From Guillardia theta CCMP2712 (Eukaryota; Protista; Cryptophyta): a DNA stretch of 46,947 nucleotides. The position numbers were made by a program, and so were the translations under genes. Below, in pieces: positions 1 to 7,946 of the stretch; within the stretch, counting starts at the first letter, position 1, and each line of letters starts with the position of its first letter. Location: positions 1-46,947 of the forward strand of contig NW_005434530.1 of NCBI RefSeq assembly GCF_000315625.1. The letters are read 5' to 3'. Below the pieces are notes generated by a model. It made no database searches, was not told the DNA's origin, and worked only from the letters and a program-made list of their open reading frames with translations.

Positions 1-1491
1 CCAGTTCTCCTTGATCATCTTCCTTAATTTGTTCTCGTCGCGGGCCGAGACCCTTACCTCTTGTAGTAGCACAACCCCAGGTTGGAAGGACTGGATTAAG
101 TATGCGAGGATGTGCTTGAGAACAAAGTGATTGCAACCATTCACATTTTGTGAGATGAGGAAACCTGGGTCTGAGCTTTTTCGATGCATCTGCGCCCAAT
201 CATTGCCCCTTTGCTCCTCCTGCCTTTCCCCCCTCCGCTCCTTCCCTCTCTGGGAGGTTTTCTCTCCTGATTGTGCATTCTCCTCCATTTCCTCACCCAG
301 ATGTCTTGGTTGGGGCTTCGTGGGGGTCGCTTGCCGCTGGATTGCGATCGGCTGTACCTCCTCCTCAAGCTTTGTCGTCGAGGTCATCAGCCGCTGGATT
401 GCGTGTGGCTGTACCTCCTCCTCAAGCTTTGTCGTCGAGGTCATCAGCCGCTGGATTGCGTGTGGCTGTACCTCCTCCTCAAGCTTTGTCGTCGAGGTCA
501 TCAGCCGCTGGATTGCGTTCGGCTGTACCTCCTCCTCCGGCTTTGTCGTCGATGTCAAGTTCTCTTGCACCCTCGCCTCCTTCGGCAGAGATCGCAGAAT
601 TACCTGGGCCGTTTCCTCCATCTTCTCCAGATGGGTGAGAGCTTCGATCAGTTGTGTTCTGGTTTGCATCAGCCATTCTTGCGGAGGTCTTAGTCTTGTC
701 CTCGTTTCCATCGTTGCTAGCCAGTCTTGATTTGTCTCGCAGAGCAGTAGGGTGTGAAGGATAGCGAACACTCCGCAGTTGAAGTTATCTTCCTGTTGGA
801 AGGCTGAGCACCACTTTACCTGCCATGGGGCGTTGGTCTGATCGTCAAAGATGTGTTCGATCACTCCGATTGTCAGCTCAGCCATTTCTCTTGCTCCGTG
901 CTCCCCCGTTGTTGCAAGATTCCTCGCTCCCTCGATCCCTCGTGGGTCCCTCGTTGTGCTCGTTCTGTCCTCGCAGAGAGGGTCCAATATGTACGCGCAT
1001 CGCCGATCATATCTTAATGCAATTAGAATCCAGTGGTTGCTGTGGATGATAGTTGGAAACAGGAAGGTGTGTTGCTCATCTCTCAAGCTGCTGAGGTGAA
1101 ATCTGTTCCCGACTCTCAAGCGGGACGCCTCGTCTCGCAGACTGGATATTACCCTTGGCAAGAAGATGATGTTCCGCGTTTGCTGGTCCTCGTGGGCTCT
1201 CCCTTTGCGTACCATGTGTATTGCTCGTCCTCCTTGAAGAGCCTTGCTCATCTCATTGAGAGTAACTTCGATCATGTTCTCGCATAAAAATCCGCTTACT
1301 CCTCGATTGTTCAGGGCAGTGATGCCAAATTCCTTGTCGCCTCGTTTGTCTGACCATGGGATCTCCTCGATCCAATCAAAAAAATACAGTGTTCTATCTA
1401 CATGTTGCGTTTCCTTTGAAACCGTTTCCATCTCCCCCCCTTGCCTACTCCCGGCACTCCCCCCTTCCTCCTCCCTTCCTCCTCCTGTCAT
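1..1491 (-). CDS. Retrotransposon ORF2 (partial, open at window edge): Ulp1/C48-like cysteine protease + repeat linker + APE endonuclease N-terminus
   Basis: Manual translation from the ATG at 1491 gives 497 codons with no stop. Motifs: FLFPTIIHSNHWILI (His at 1035-1033), CAYILDPL (Asp at 984-982), FQQEDNFNCGVFA (Cys at 777-775), then 19-aa repeats, then GFLISQNVNGCNH...FQPGVVLLQEVRV. Confidence 0.88.
   Translation of the reverse strand, partial: MTGGGREEEGGSAGSRQGGEMETVSKETQHVDRTLYFFDWIEEIPWSDKRGDKEFGITALNNRGVSGFLCENMIEVTLNEMSKALQGGRAIHMVRKGRAHEDQQTRNIIFLPRVISSLRDEASRLRVGNRFHLSSLRDEQHTFLFPTIIHSNHWILIALRYDRRCAYILDPLCEDRTSTTRDPRGIEGARNLATTGEHGAREMAELTIGVIEHIFDDQTNAPWQVKWCSAFQQEDNFNCGVFAILHTLLLCETNQDWLATMETRTRLRPPQEWLMQTRTQLIEALTHLEKMEETAQVILRSLPKEARVQENLTSTTKPEEEVQPNAIQRLMTSTTKLEEEVQPHAIQRLMTSTTKLEEEVQPHAIQRLMTSTTKLEEEVQPIAIQRQATPTKPQPRHLGEEMEENAQSGEKTSQRGKERRGERQEEQRGNDWAQMHRKSSDPGFLISQNVNGCNHFVLKHILAYLIQSFQPGVVLLQEVRVSARDENKLRKMIKENW
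333..552. repeat. 57-bp coding tandem repeat, about 3.9 copies (19 aa, EEEVQPHAIQRLMTSTTKL)
   Basis: Unit gccgctggattgcg..ggctgtacctcctcctcaagctttgtcgtcgaggtcatca starts at 333, 390, 447 and 504, in frame within ORF2. Confidence 0.95.
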
Positions 1492-1500
1492 GATTCGGTT

Positions 1501-3606
1501 TTAGAGTTGAGAGGCAACCTCTCCCTCTTGGTTGCCACTCTCCTCTTCCATCTCCAGTCCCATCTCCTCCTCTGCCTTGCTCAAGAGAAACTCAATTTCG
1601 TCTCCCGAGCCAACGCTGCCTTGGTAGGTTAGCGTAGCTGTGAGAACTAATTTATTCAGGGCAAGAAACAACAGGTCAGTTCGAAATTCTTTTTGTTGTT
1701 TCTCCCCTCCTCTCCCTGTTGCTTTTGCAAAGGCTCCCTGGCGTCTTCTTGATGCTACCGTCTCCCACGCATGCTGCTCGCTTACTCTTGCAATCTTACT
1801 CTTCAAAACTTGCATGTCGTCGTCCTGGGTTGCCGAGGATGATTCCGCCCATTCCTTCAGTGTCGGAAAACATGCATTTCCAGGAGATGACAAGCTGTCG
1901 TACAGGCCGACGATGGCTCCATCGAGCCTGAGTTTGCAAGCTTGGTTTTCTGCACTCTGTCCCTGGTTGACAGTCTCCTCTAGAACTTTGTAGATGTCTT
2001 CGAGGACCACGTTTGCCTCTGGTTCTGGGATGTTGATCTCATTCTCGATCCGTTCGAGATCTACCTGAGCCCAAAGAGGCTCTGTAGGGGGTTCTGTAGC
2101 GATCGCTTCCCAGATGTTGGCACTGCCTGGCTCTAGGAGAAGAAGTTTCCCTGCCCTGTCCCATGGCGCAAAGGACCTGAGGATGTCAATCGCCGTTTCT
2201 TTTTCTGAGAAGCTGAGCACTAGATGTTCACCGTTCCAGCTGTTGGTCTCGACATCTTCTTTCGAGGAGATCTTGACGATGTGCTCAGCCGCTGACTCCT
2301 TCCAGCTCGCCACGATCCGTCTCAGTCCTCGAATTGTCATGCCCATAGAGAGATCCTCCCCGTCGCAGATCTGTTCAGCTTCCTCTCTGGTGAACCTTCC
2401 CTTCTGTGCTTTACTCTTGACCAGTACCTCATAGGTCACTCTTCGTGGTACTGCTCCTAGCGCGTCGGGCAAGAAGTCCAACCTAATTGGATGCTGTCTC
2501 GTTACCCTGGTGATTGCACTAACCTGAGTAGTGAACCATTTGAGGATCTTTTCATCTTCCGACATCAGTCCGAGGTGTATGCTTCCTCCATTCCTGTCGT
2601 CTCCCTCAAACATCCGTAGCGTGGTGCTCAGGACGTCCGTCGAAGAGCATCTCGCAATCCAATCGATCTCTCTTCCTTGTCGTATCTCGTCCACTCCGGC
2701 TGCTGCGAAAGTGCGTTTGTTGGGCTGACCTTGAGGTCTCCTCTTCGTCTTGACCTCTAGCTGCATGCCCGCTTCCGGCTGCACCTCCAACACAGCTATT
2801 CCTTGTTGCAGCAGGTGTTGACGATAGATCTCCGTAATCCCGGCTGAGTTCATGCCATTCATCTTGAGGAGGTGAGAGAACTCAGCTAGGGCCCCCGCCT
2901 TGCCAGAGTGCTTATCCTTCTGTGGCCTTATCTTGAAGGAGCAAGGATGCTTCGAATGCGCGTTCACCGCGCGGATCATCTTTCCGTCGATCCTGAAGTT
3001 CGTCTGTCCTTTCCACAGCAGTTCTGCTGCGTCGTTCAATTGGAGTGTTGCCACGACTGGGATTTCATCCACTGTCGGAATCAAATCTTTCTTGATCGGG
3101 GCTCTCCACGAGATGCATTTCTTGCCCTGCTCCTCGTGCACCAAGAGTCCTTGATCCTTCAACTTCTCACACAGTACCTCAACTTGTTTTATGTACTGGG
3201 TAGGAACTCCGAGGATAGCCATGGTAATCAGTTTACCACTCTCGGGGGACGCTCCTGAAGCATCGATGCAGGCACTCTTGTCTAGTACCTCCTGTTTGTC
3301 TGCGTTCCATGCAGAGACATACCACGACTGTCCTTCTTCCCCCCATTCTTTGATGGCATCCTCCTGGCTCCTGACTTCAGCATGTTTGCAGGTCTGTCGA
3401 ATGGCTTCGGCTAAGGCGTTCATCGAGACTTCCTTGGACTGCAAGGCTCTGCCTGTCCTGCTCTGAGGGTACTGCCTGACGAAGTGTTCCAATCTTCGGA
3501 TCAGCTCTCCTAGCGAAGGTGCTGAAGGCGTCGTGTCCTTGTTTAGGAACTGGGAAACTCGGACGCGAGCAATCTGTTTCCTTTCCTCTTTGGATAGATA
3601 CCACAT
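1501..3606 (-). CDS. Retrotransposon ORF1 (gag-like position), 701 aa from the first ATG; possible degenerate RRM
   Basis: Long intronless ORF directly upstream of ORF2 and in the same frame. ITMAILGVPTQY...GQTNFRIDGKMIRAV is loosely RRM-like. No CCHC knuckle seen. Confidence 0.75.
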   Translation of the reverse strand: MWYLSKEERKQIARVRVSQFLNKDTTPSAPSLGELIRRLEHFVRQYPQSRTGRALQSKEVSMNALAEAIRQTCKHAEVRSQEDAIKEWGEEGQSWYVSAWNADKQEVLDKSACIDASGASPESGKLITMAILGVPTQYIKQVEVLCEKLKDQGLLVHEEQGKKCISWRAPIKKDLIPTVDEIPVVATLQLNDAAELLWKGQTNFRIDGKMIRAVNAHSKHPCSFKIRPQKDKHSGKAGALAEFSHLLKMNGMNSAGITEIYRQHLLQQGIAVLEVQPEAGMQLEVKTKRRPQGQPNKRTFAAAGVDEIRQGREIDWIARCSSTDVLSTTLRMFEGDDRNGGSIHLGLMSEDEKILKWFTTQVSAITRVTRQHPIRLDFLPDALGAVPRRVTYEVLVKSKAQKGRFTREEAEQICDGEDLSMGMTIRGLRRIVASWKESAAEHIVKISSKEDVETNSWNGEHLVLSFSEKETAIDILRSFAPWDRAGKLLLLEPGSANIWEAIATEPPTEPLWAQVDLERIENEINIPEPEANVVLEDIYKVLEETVNQGQSAENQACKLRLDGAIVGLYDSLSSPGNACFPTLKEWAESSSATQDDDMQVLKSKIARVSEQHAWETVASRRRQGAFAKATGRGGEKQQKEFRTDLLFLALNKLVLTATLTYQGSVGSGDEIEFLLSKAEEEMGLEMEEESGNQEGEVASQL

Positions 3607-3710
3607 GATCAAACAACCGTTTCTGCACAGAAAAATATCCTGTTCAGCACCCTAGCTCGCAGGGATCCCCTCAAACTGCAGGGGAGGAGAGCATGTCTGT
3701 TACTCCAGCG

Positions 3711-3803
3711 CTAAACCCTAAACCCTAAACCCTAAACCCTAAACCCTAAACCCTAAACCCTAAACCCCAAACCCTAAACCCCAAATCCTAAACCCTAAAC
3801 CCT
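3711..3803. repeat. Telomeric repeat array (CCCTAAA)n / (TTTAGGG)n, about 13 units
   Basis: Perfect ctaaaccc units from 3711, with variant units (CCCCAAA, TCCTAAA) at the right end. The C-rich strand is on +, the polarity of a left chromosome end. Confidence 0.97.
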
Positions 3804-5259
3804 TACGAGATCCCTGTTAGACTAGAATAGAGCAAGGTGATAACAAGCCATGCAACCTACCTAGCATTCTAATAAACTCAACTATTACTACTAGGGTTTA
3901 GCCTACCTTAGGGTAAGTCTAAAGTATATGTACAGCAGCAGATCCATTAAATTACCTTGTCACTAAAAAATTCCAAAAGGGGATTTGAACGAAATGGGCT
4001 ACTAAACACTGCCTATTGTCGAAACAAGGTTTGCTCGTCCCCGTCTCCTTGAAAAGATGATATGTTGTAATTCAGCCCGGCGCTGCATGCCATCGGATGA
4101 TCATCTGATTGCTGCTCAGTGCCGAGTGAAGAATAAAAAAAAAACGCTCAGTGAAAGCGATGTCGGAAATAAAGCTGTAAAGGAAAAAAATTGTTTTTTT
4201 TCATGTACATGGTCGGGTGGCAACGTGTCTAGCGCAAGAGAACCGACCCCCTGAGCGCCAGAGGGGGTAGGGTAGTTCAAACATTTTGAATTGTACCAGG
4301 GGGGTAGAGGTGATATGACGGGGTGATGTCTTGACAACAGAGATGGGGTAGGTCAGCATTTGTTTGTTTGGGTGGTAGGGGTGGTCGAATCGATCTGGCG
4401 GATCGTCTCGTGCTGCATAGCGGCCACAGACGACCACGACGACGGAGAACGATGAAGAGAAGAGAAGAGAAGACATGTAGACCATTTGCGTGCCCCATGC
4501 TTGACGAACACAAACTTGATGCTAGCTAGAATGAGTTGTGAGCTTCAAAGAGAGGATACAACAAGAATGCAAAGTACCGAGTATTGCGCTAATGGTTGGA
4601 ATGAAGACTTTGTGAAGCATCAAAGAATACGTTTATCCAAGAAGAAATATTCCTAAAATCAATTTCGTAGATCAAAGATAGATAGAGCATGGTCTAAATA
4701 CAGAAACATGAGATGAGCAGGCTCTGAAGATGGTGTCGTATGCCTAACCAGGATCCATCTGGAACAAACGAAGAGACAGAGCGAGATCATACATGACTAC
4801 TGACAATCTGTCGCAAAGAAAGTAGAAGGAGAATTCTTACAGGATGACGATAAGAAGGAGCTAGCGACATGGATTGAACACTGTCTGTGCGAACATGTAA
4901 CGTGTAGCGACGTTTCAAGAGGATGAGGCTGATGAGTAGTGCATCGTATATGCATGAGTGACATTGATTTCTGCAAAATGATGACTTCCTCTTCAAATTT
5001 TCACATTTTGATGCTTGCCTTTCTTGTTTCATATCGCCTTGAGCTAAAAGCGTCTGCCTGACGAAAAGATAGCGTTGTAAAACTTATCTCTTAAGGTTTC
5101 CCGTGCTTGCTACAAACAAGTTGACCTCTTTTCTTGTTGCAGAGCGCCTTCAGCTTTGTTCAAAGCCACTTGCCAGCATTTCTCTGGTGTTGTTTCCTCT
5201 CCTCTGATTGTTTAACTCACCTACTTAACAGGTTTGAAACCTGTTGAAAGATTAGAGGC

Positions 5260-7946
5260 ATGTCTACTCCAGGTCAGAACTCTGCTGTTGTCAAGGCAGT
5301 CTTGTCTGGCGATACTCTCATCGTCATGGGAGCTCCTCAAAACGGCCCCCCCCCTGAGAAGCAGATCACTCTATCCGGCATCATTGCTCCTCGCCTCGGC
5401 CGTCGTGACGGACAGTCGAAGGACGAGCCCTTTGCCTGGCCAGCTCGCGAGTTTCTCAGGAAAGCTTGTGTAGGGAAGGGAGTGACGTTTGAGCTCGAAG
5501 AATTCGTCGCCAGCATCGGCAAATCCTTTGGGCGCGTCTACTTGAATGGTCAGGACGTTGGAGCAATGATCGTGTCAGCTGGCTGGGCCAAAGTTAAGCC
5601 GGCGGTGGGAAACAACGTAGCCAAGAATGCCTATATCGATGAGTTGCTGCAGCTTGAGCAGGCAGCACAGGCCCAAAGCCTTGGCATGTGGAGCAAGGAG
5701 ACAAACGCATCCGCTCTCTCAATCCGAAACATCTTGGTTCCTGGCGATGGAGGATACGACGCTAAGGATGTTCTCGAGGCGTTCAAAGGCCAGTCGATTC
5801 CTCTTGTGATCGAGCAGTTCCGTGACGGTGCGACTCTGCGAGGCTACTTGCTCCCTTCCTTCCACTGGGTCACGATCTTCCTGTCTGGCATCTCCTGCCC
5901 CGGATTCAAGCGTGCTGAAGATCCGAGCTTGCCCGACACTGCAGAGCCATTTGCGATGGAGGCAAAGTACTTCGTGGAGAGCCGTCTGCTCAATCGAGAT
6001 GTGCACGTGATGCTGGAGGGTGTGGACAAGTACAACAACTTTTACGGGACTGTGAAGCACCCAGCCGGTAACATCAGCGAGGAGCTGCTCAAAGTTGGTC
6101 TTTCCAAGGTGGTCGACTGGAGTGCAAAGTTCACTCAGGATCCTGAGCTGTTGTACAAAGCCGAGAGAATCGCTAAGGAGAAGAGGCTGAGGATGTGGCA
6201 GAACTATGTTGCGCCTGCTCGCAGTGCCACGATTGCATCTGCTGCCGAGTTTGTTGGCAAAGTCTCTGAGGTCATCTCGGGTGACTTCCTCGTCATCAAG
6301 GACTTTGCTGTGCCGCCCATGGAGCATCGCGTTGCTCTATCAAGCATCCGCGCGCCGAAGATAGGAAGAAGAGACGAGAAGGACGAGCCCTGGGCCTTCG
6401 AGGCCAGGGAGTTTCTTCGCACGAGGCTTATTGGGAGGAAGGTGACTGTCGGCATCGACTACATCCGACAGCTCCCCAACTCCACTGCAGAGACTGAACG
6501 GGTCTTCGCCTCCGTGCTGGAAGGGAACAACAACGTAGCCGTTGCCCTCGTGGCAAACGGGTTGGCCTCTGTTATGAAGCATCGGCAGGATGACCAGGAC
6601 CGTTCGCTGTACTACGACGATTTGATCCAAGCGGAAGCCGCTGCTACTAGAGACAAGAAAGGCATTCACTCCGACAAGCCTCCTGCTCCCCGCCATGTGA
6701 ACGACATTTCCACTCAGGCAGCGCTTGCTCAGGCGAAGCAGATGTTTACTTTCCTTCAACGAGCTGGAAGACTCCAAGGAACTGTCCAGCACGTTGTCAA
6801 CGGAGCTCGAGTCAAGGTGTACATCCCGAAGCAAAGCTGCATCATCTCTCTTGCGCTTGCTGGCGTCAAGTGCCCATCCACAGGGAGAAAGGAAGGAGAT
6901 CAAGGAGAACCTTACGGTGAGGAAGCGCTTCAGTTTACCAAGGAGAGGTGCCTGCAGCATGACGTCGAGGTCGAGGTCCTTGCGCAGGACAAGATCGGCA
7001 CAATGATCGGCAAGGTCTACCTGTACAAGCGCGACCTTTCGGCGCTTCTGCTGCAGGAGGGCCTTGCAAGGACGACAGGCAGAGATCTCACTAACGAGAT
7101 GGAGCAAGCAGAGCTGAGCGCTCAGCAGGCTAGGCTGAGAACATGGGAGAGGTACGACGCCGAGTTGGAGGCTGCACGTGCCGCAGAGGCAGCGGCAGAG
7201 GTGGTGGAGCATGCGTCTCAAGAGATGAGCATGGTGACTGTGGTCGAGATGCTGAGCCCGTCAGTTTCTACGTGCATGCTGCTGGAGTTGACAAGCAGAT
7301 CGAGCTCCTGACCGATCGCCTTGCCAACGCCAAGCTTGACGGCAGCAAGTCTGATTTTAGTCCCAAGGTCGGCGAGGCCTGCGTGGCGAAGTTCTCGGCA
7401 GACAACCAGTGGTACCGTGCGCAGGTGGAGGCACGCAAAGCCGACTCGTTCCTCGTCCTCTTCCGTGACTTTGGCAATCGAGAGGAGGTCAAGCTCAAGG
7501 ACTTGCGGCCCATCCCTTCCTCCGTCCCCTCCTTCCAGCAGATCCCCCCACAGGCGGTCGAGTACAAGCTGGCGTATGTCAAAGTCCCGTCGGCAGATGA
7601 AGAGAACATGGCTGAGGCCACTGGCTTCATGCAGAACCTGCTGGGGGCCTGCGAGGGTGTGTTGAGCGCTAAGACTGAGTTCTTCGAACGATCCGGTCGC
7701 CATCACGTGACCCTCGTCGACAACTCGACGGGTGAGAACGTTGCAGCACTTCTCCTCCGCAACGGACTCGCCAAGCTTGAGAGGAGGCGACAGGACACGC
7801 CAGGGCTCAAGGAAGAGCAGGAGCGCGCGAGAAACGCGCATCTCGGCATCTGGCGATACGGTGACGCTGTGGACTCAGACGAGGACGACCGATCGTTTGC
7901 TCAGGACGTGGCGCAGGCGCGAGCCAAGGTGAAAGGAGGCAAATGA
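5260..7946 (+). CDS. SND1: Staphylococcal nuclease and Tudor domain-containing protein (Tudor-SN/p100); frameshift near 7257-7261
   Basis: Four SNase repeats (VKAVLSGDTL, DEPFAWPAREFLRK, EPFAMEAKYFVESRLLNRDV, DEPWAFEAREFLRTRLIGRKV) in ORF 5260-7311. The Tudor domain (AKFSADNQWYRAQV, FRDFGNRE) and C-terminal EQERARNAHLGIWRYGD lie in the -1 frame (ORF 7143-7946). Confidence 0.95.

Follow-up and report, generated by a model that had tools for sequence, protein, structure and literature searches.

The left-hand edge of a 46,947-nt stretch of Guillardia theta CCMP2712 DNA (contig NW_005434530.1; the entire stretch is herein referred to as the window) holds the 5′ part of a mobile element that is read on the minus strand and continues past window position 1. 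The element is a non-long-terminal-repeat retrotransposon, or long interspersed nuclear element (LINE), in which a protease domain is fused upstream of an apurinic-like endonuclease (APE) within the second open reading frame (ORF2). From right to left along the minus strand, unique DNA is followed by a telomere-type (TTTAGGG)~13 tract, a 104-nt leader, ORF1, a 9-nt spacer and finally ORF2, which continues to the window edge. The protease domain (ORF2 residues ~40–284, positions 640..1374, minus strand) is almost certainly an Ulp1/SENP-type cysteine protease of clan CE (C48-like), as judged from concordant sequence, profile, language-model and predicted-fold comparisons.

The visible part of ORF2 (1..1491, minus strand) comprises its first 497 codons, starting with an ATG at 1491 and remaining open to the window edge, with the rest of the frame beyond position 1. 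The preliminary description of this DNA, which had been made from the sequence alone, placed a catalytic domain at the N-terminus of ORF2 and noted its absence from the list of open reading frames; both observations are correct, the latter because the listing omits open reading frames that run off the end of the sequence. The ORF2 start codon lies 9 nt past the ORF1 stop codon (TAA, 1503–1501), which in this copy is in frame with ORF2. The frame opens with a Gly-rich stretch, MTGGGREEEGGSAGSRQGG, and this Gly-rich N-terminus (MTGGGREEEGGSAGSRQGGE; 1432..1491, minus strand) is encoded by purine-rich GGAGG runs; the TGGG, EGG and QGG motifs to which the preliminary description had drawn attention represent a genuine enrichment, as 8 of the 30 Gly residues fall within the first 20 residues of ORF2 (hypergeometric P 5e-6). 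The protease domain that follows is free of stop codons and frameshifts.

Between the protease and the endonuclease lies a linker containing a 57-bp tandem repeat (333..557, minus strand; 3.9 copies with 95% matches by Tandem Repeats Finder, TRF), which on translation codes for 19-residue units (LMTSTTKLEEEVQPHAIQR). No GG occurs in this protease–APE linker. The APE-type endonuclease itself is represented by its first ~50 residues (NVNGC ... LLQEV; 1..147, minus strand), which are cut by the window edge and give a weak match to Pfam Exo_endo_phos (E 0.027, profile positions 2–48).

Catalytic motifs and clan CE identity

The motifs named in the preliminary description are present in one minus-strand frame and in the order and spacing expected of clan CE. 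The first, FPTIIHSNHWIL, has the form P-x5-NHWIL, with NHWIL at 1038–1024; YILDPL follows at 993–976 and QQEDNFNCGVFA, which contains both Gln233 and Cys239, at 798–763. The predicted catalytic His153 (1033..1035, within NHWIL) is followed directly by Trp154 and aligns with the His of the SHW motif in the solved structures 6dg4 and 1euv. The predicted catalytic Asp170 (982..984, within YILDPL), which is invariant in the family alignment (herein referred to as A2), lies 17 residues past His153. The Gln-to-Cys block (QEDNFNC, 775..795) runs from the oxyanion Gln233 (795–793) to the nucleophile Cys239 (777–775) and aligns with the QxxxxDCG block of 6dg4 and 1euv, and the oxyanion Gln is found upstream of the Cys, as had been claimed. 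The His-to-Asp and Gln-to-Cys spacings (17 and 6 residues, respectively) are identical to those of yeast Ulp1 chain 1euv, and the part of the domain that aligns with solved CE structures extends over residues 62–284 (640–1308, minus strand). His153 is invariant in A2, as are Trp154 and the Q, D, F, N, C and G of the Gln–Cys block. Relatives that share only 26–38% identity with the domain in the window all retain N-H-W-I-L, the Asp and Q-x-D-x-F-N-C-G. With its His-Asp-Cys triad and oxyanion Gln in place, the domain is apparently intact.

Profile annotation of the single sequence is less decisive. C48 is the sole relevant Pfam match for the domain; against a gathering threshold of 20.7 bits for Peptidase_C48 (PF02902), however, the window sequence alone scores 17.1 bits as a 498-aa piece and 19.2 bits as an isolated domain, so a strict annotation pipeline would miss it. 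The members of the family fare better, six of the eight matching PF02902 at E up to 1 (best 7.9e-9). Comparison with solved structures is more consistent: a phmmer search of PDB sequences returned as its best match the Ulp1-like SUMO protease 6dg4 (E 7e-4, with both motif blocks aligned), and all 23 PDB matches of the family profile at E up to 1 belong to clan CE (Ulp1, SENP1/2/5 and ChlaDub1/2). Additionally, an hhalign comparison of the family with the C48 domain encoded by a metagenome contig, L005, which passes the Pfam cut-off at 39.7 bits, gave a probability of 97.1% (E 5.8e-11), and a feature search of the ESM Atlas found C48 in 54 of 60 neighbour clusters with scores up to 0.95.

The predicted fold leads to the same clan. 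AlphaFold with the eight-row alignment gave a model of moderate confidence (mean predicted local distance difference test score, pLDDT, 57.8; predicted template modelling score 0.62), and without an alignment no usable model (pLDDT 33). When the former was compared with 48,161 PDB representatives using VIA-align, the 30 best chains were all CE clan members (Z 5.7–13.9), after which the scores dropped to 4.9 and below for non-CE chains; the 50 top Foldseek matches were likewise all of the CE clan (best E 1.6e-5). The absence of a clan CE fold match, named in the preliminary description as grounds for discarding the C48 assignment, is therefore contradicted, and the assignment is upheld by the PDB profile, hhalign and fold matches together. 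The highest-ranking chains were the de-SUMOylating protease 5lnb (Z 13.9), SENP7 (13.5), XopD (12.8), NEDP1 (12.3) and Ulp1 (11.4), and the viral polyprotein-processing CE proteases scored lower (mpox I7L, 8.9; adenain, 8.3; African swine fever virus, ASFV, pS273R, 7.8). The SUMO/NEDD8 isopeptidases (the SENP/Ulp1/XopD/NEDP1 group, Z 10.8–13.9) thus rank above the viral processing enzymes (Z 7.8–8.9), a ranking among CE subfamilies that is soft because it was obtained with a model of moderate confidence built from eight aligned sequences.

Relatives and surroundings of the element

The protease family is rare. When 1.84 billion representative proteins were searched exhaustively with phmmer, only eight relatives came up, all of them short fragments. 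Neither the 498-aa ORF2 piece nor the isolated protease gave a match in word-index protein searches, and a search with the family profile returned nothing beyond the short fragments already found. The longer cluster members of the family are P0009 (263 aa) and P0010 (398 aa), of which the latter starts with a Gly-rich N-terminus (MEAGGGGEG) comparable to that of ORF2. Where a relative carries a name, its source is in most cases a cryptophyte transcriptome (Hanusia phi or Rhodomonas salina); one is labelled Prymnesium polylepis. Scanning metagenomes with the single protein brought up no relative, and with A2 the sole match was L005, a C48 protein from an unrelated host. This contig (OGCD01000025.1) carries at 3910–7824 an AT-rich open reading frame of 1304 aa, whose C48 domain (Pfam E 6e-10) is C-terminal and precedes a Cys/His-rich tail; no domain besides C48 was recognised in it. 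In layout it resembles the Ulp1-plus-PHD ends of Ginger1 and Mutator transposases and is probably of the DNA-transposon Ulp1 sort.

The succession of protease, linker and APE is repeated in a relative that is 32% identical, on the European Nucleotide Archive contig L006 and on the degenerate Joint Genome Institute contigs L003 and L004, with the endonuclease start (SQNVNGC..FVLKHILA) found 3′ of the protease in L003 and L006. The protease-then-APE order therefore holds in two diverged lineages. Not all copies are intact: P0001 is a near-identical copy with a frameshift, L003 and L004 have stop codons inside the protease, and L006 has one between the protease and the APE. In the contigs of four sequencing runs, the sole difference seen in the protease region is synonymous (1399 T>G; Val31, GTA>GTC). 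On contig L006 (100–130), a TAATG combines the stop codon of ORF1 with the start codon of ORF2, which are read in different frames. Such an overlap is the classic arrangement for termination–reinitiation and suggests, as far as sequence can indicate, that ORF2 may be translated by that route and not as a fusion. We had considered the in-frame ORF1 stop of the window copy as a sign of a readthrough polyprotein and rejected this given the frame-shifted overlap in L006.

Upstream of ORF2, ORF1 (1501..3606, minus strand) runs from an ATG at 3606 and encodes 701 aa; it matches neither a Pfam family above threshold nor any PDB sequence. One contig only carries the identical ORF1 protein, Logan contig L001 (3223 bp), which ends inside the 57-bp repeat of the ORF2 linker and so indicates that short-read assemblies break there. 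Neither blastn nor tblastn found a second copy of the element within the window. Its word share is 0.6–0.94 in 20 sequencing runs from 11 studies; some of these runs are presumed to be RNA, although none is recorded as such. In two runs the summed contig depth, a poor measure, is ~10-fold higher over the 5′ two-thirds of ORF1 than over ORF2 (e.g., 780–944 vs 55 in run X5; window 1925–3700), and contigs diverge at 3050 and 3624, with small joints at 1980–2087 in the ORF1 region. The depth excess and the contig divergence fit extra 5′ variants or ORF1-only partner elements.

The 104-nt 5′ untranslated region (3607..3710, minus strand), which begins with CGCTGGAGTAACAG at 3710, stands directly against the distal end of the telomere-type tract (3711..3803, minus strand), and L001 begins 1 nt ahead of this leader start with a different base there. 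The tract has a period of 7 and 13.3 copies by TRF, and the TTTAGGG pattern matches 11 times against an expectation of 0; its variant units (TTTGGGG and TTTAGGA) are located at the end far from the element, which is the gene-proximal side. The sense strand of the element continues the G-rich telomere strand, and the 3′ junction of the element is located beyond the window. From its sequence, the 5′ junction fits an endonuclease-mediated insertion into telomere repeats, in which the C-strand would have served as primer, rather than a Drosophila-style attachment to a chromosome end. Some 1.5 kb from the tract lies a Tudor-SN/SND1-like gene (5260–7946; four SNase repeats, Pfam E 6.7e-65), which continues in a second frame after ~7150, suggesting an intron; the telomere-like tract is hence only ~1.5 kb from an ordinary-looking gene.

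Possible roles of the protease

Our best explanation joins the identity of the domain, the nature of the element and an enzymatic role for the protease, and as a whole we consider it fairly probable. The element is, by analogy with published systems, most likely a Dualen/RandI-clade LINE of the cryptophyte kind, an assignment that rests on the literature, as the reverse transcriptase (RT) and any restriction-like endonuclease (RLE) would lie beyond the window. A Zepp-like Chlorella L1 element, our first guess from the TTTAGGG repeats, was rejected because relatives and architecture point to a cryptophyte Dualen. We hypothesize that the protease domain travels as part of the ORF2 protein in the ribonucleoprotein of the element and works there as an isopeptidase for a ubiquitin-like modifier (UBL), most likely SUMO. 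At or before target-primed reverse transcription, it would remove this modifier from proteins of the element itself or from host factors of chromatin, repair or silencing. This enzymatic role, considered by itself, is a tentative proposal that in our estimation falls a little short of an even chance.

In the Ulp1–Smt3 structure, the Gly-Gly tunnel of Ulp1 is formed by two Trp residues, Trp448 and Trp515, and the Trp that follows the catalytic His is one wall of it. We favour an isopeptidase because the fold matches SUMO/NEDD8 isopeptidases better than viral processing CE proteases, because that Trp is invariant in the family, and because the protease–APE linker in the window is devoid of GG. 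The reading draws further on published mobile elements, since in the cryptophyte element Dualen-1_GCr the C48 domain occurs together with a chromatin-directed module, a SET methyltransferase (PMC5029228), and since DNA transposons that do not produce a polyprotein repeatedly contain Ulp1 and OTU domains (PMC2836005).

Several points weigh against this reading. The window sequence by itself stays below the Pfam threshold, the ranking of fold matches within clan CE is soft, and the Dualen assignment depends on regions beyond the window. The other tunnel position is apparently Phe68 (GFL, vs RWL in 1euv), in a stretch of the alignment that scores approximately zero. Our literature searches found no activity data for any transposon-encoded Ulp1 domain; very long single-ORF relatives (Dualen-1_GCr, 5287 aa) plausibly need processing; and the recurrence of a Gly-rich N-terminus in P0010 is left without explanation if the protease acts as an isopeptidase.

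The last two points belong to a different account, under which the protease would cut the element's own product, in cis or in trans, at sites of the Gly-Gly type, much like the CE proteases that adenovirus, ASFV and poxviruses encode, and would free the protease, the endonuclease/RT or an ORF1–ORF2 fusion. The Gly-rich N-terminus (MTGGG..EGG..QGG) would suit such a site, directly past an ORF1 stop that is in frame with ORF2, and MTGG↓G fits the (M/L/I)-x-G-G↓x pattern at which adenain cleaves, a resemblance that serves as a lead and not as a test. P0010 adds to its own Gly-rich start a WGGGL just past its protease domain, the viral processing proteases are among the fold matches, and a single 5287-aa protein such as Dualen-1_GCr invites processing. 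However, the TAATG overlap of L006 implies that a readthrough fusion is not a conserved feature, the linker offers no GG, and the fold is clearly closer to the UBL isopeptidases than to the viral enzymes; moreover, the Gly-rich stretch corresponds to purine-rich GGAGG DNA and may reflect low complexity or a signal for translation. What Ulp1-type enzymes recognise is the folded body of SUMO and not a bare GG. The autoprocessing that the preliminary description had read into the di-glycines is thus only weakly indicated, particularly as the GG cluster lies within the first 19 residues of ORF2, where cleavage would matter only in an ORF1–ORF2 fusion. We regard polyprotein cutting as unlikely, and as less likely than the isopeptidase role.

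The broken copies described above, with a frameshift in P0001, stop codons inside the protease in L003 and L004 and a stop codon between protease and APE in L006, could instead be taken to mean that the domain is a decayed or noncatalytic passenger, i.e., a captured fragment of a host Ulp1 that is drifting or is kept as a structural or binding module and has no enzymatic role in transposition. The strong divergence of the family, its score below the Pfam cut-off and its eight matches in 1.84 billion proteins would all suit such a passenger. Nevertheless, the His, Asp, Gln and Cys and the N-HWIL and D-FNCG flanks are invariant in relatives that are only 26–32% identical overall, which bears the mark of selection for catalysis; the window copy is open for 497 codons; and the lone protease-region difference across four runs leaves Val31 unchanged. 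We accordingly find a passenger improbable. That three short motifs should have arisen by accident in a nonprotease would be compatible with the sub-threshold Pfam score and with the pLDDT of 33 for the alignment-free model, but sequence, profile, language-model and fold comparisons independently indicate clan CE, and the PDB profile, VIA-align and hhalign results effectively refute such a coincidence, to which we attach a negligible chance.

A more specific form of the UBL-isopeptidase proposal takes the telomere tract into account. An active deSUMOylase or UBL isopeptidase, carried to the integration site by a LINE that targets telomere repeats, might strip SUMO from telomere-capping or heterochromatin-silencing proteins and open telomeric chromatin for the endonucleases of the element. 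We consider this scenario doubtful; if true, the transposon would encode an enzyme for countering silencing or gaining target access that is linked to a telomere niche. Irrespective of this scenario, Ulp1-, OTU- or Josephin-type proteases have been captured repeatedly by mobile elements (Mutator, Ginger, Helitron, NeSL/Utopia and Dualen), and the literature searched yielded no demonstrated substrate for any captured mobile-element protease of these types. As an intact and compact copy (~250 residues) that adjoins a telomere tract, in a protist that can be cultured, the domain would offer a convenient construct with which SUMO or ubiquitin editing on host chromatin could be distinguished from self-processing. 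The case also illustrates that the Pfam C48 model under-detects this lineage.

Comparison with known mobile and cellular C48 proteases

As a sequence observation, the element adds little to what has been described: cryptophyte Dualen LINEs have already been published with the same combination of domains, and it is a divergent new member of that architecture. The novelty implied by the preliminary description does not hold, as C48 upstream of an APE (PMC5029228) and Ulp1-like domains at the N-terminus in NeSL and Utopia (PMC4640811) are both on record. The Geminigera cryophila element Dualen-1_GCr (Lescot et al. 2016, ISME J), reconstructed among cryptophyte Dualen LINEs as a single 5287-aa protein, contains SET, C48, APE, RT, RNase H, CCHC and RLE modules (PMC5029228). 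The element in the window shares with it a C48 domain directly upstream of an apurinic-like endonuclease in a LINE protein, and this cryptophyte-type order, with C48 immediately before the APE, is found in the window (protease 640–1374, APE start 1–147) as well as in L003 and L006. The two differ in that the window element has a separate 701-aa ORF1 and that Pfam detects no SET domain in its ORF1 or visible ORF2. The window copy also adjoins telomere repeats, whereas in that report we came across no reference to telomere targeting (PMC5029228). The Dualens of Chlamydomonas, which possess both APE and RLE and presumably belong to the same clade, likewise encode a cysteine protease of the sort that cleaves ubiquitin-like modifiers; unlike the C48-like domain in the window, theirs is Josephin-related and of a different fold (PMC9977147).

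Outside the Dualens, the RT-containing ORF of the RLE-type LINEs NeSL and Utopia-1_TSP has an N-terminal Ulp1-like protease, as does ORF2 of the window element. These are animal elements that are target-specific and insert into repeated sequences, with spliced-leader or U2 snRNA genes as their targets, and in contrast to the window element they have a restriction-like endonuclease only and no APE (PMC4640811). Repeated capture of C48 by mobile elements extends to the DNA transposons Mutator/KI-MULE and Ginger1, in which, unlike here, Ulp1 lies C-terminal to the transposase and no reverse transcription is involved (PMC2836005). The closest structural counterparts are the cellular C48 proteases Ulp1/SENP and NEDP1/DEN1 (fold Z 10.8–13.9), with which the window domain shares the triad and oxyanion Gln at identical spacing and the HW after the His strand, and from which it is set apart by an identity of 12–20%, a Pfam score below gathering, an apparent Phe in place of the first tunnel Trp and its location inside a retrotransposon protein.

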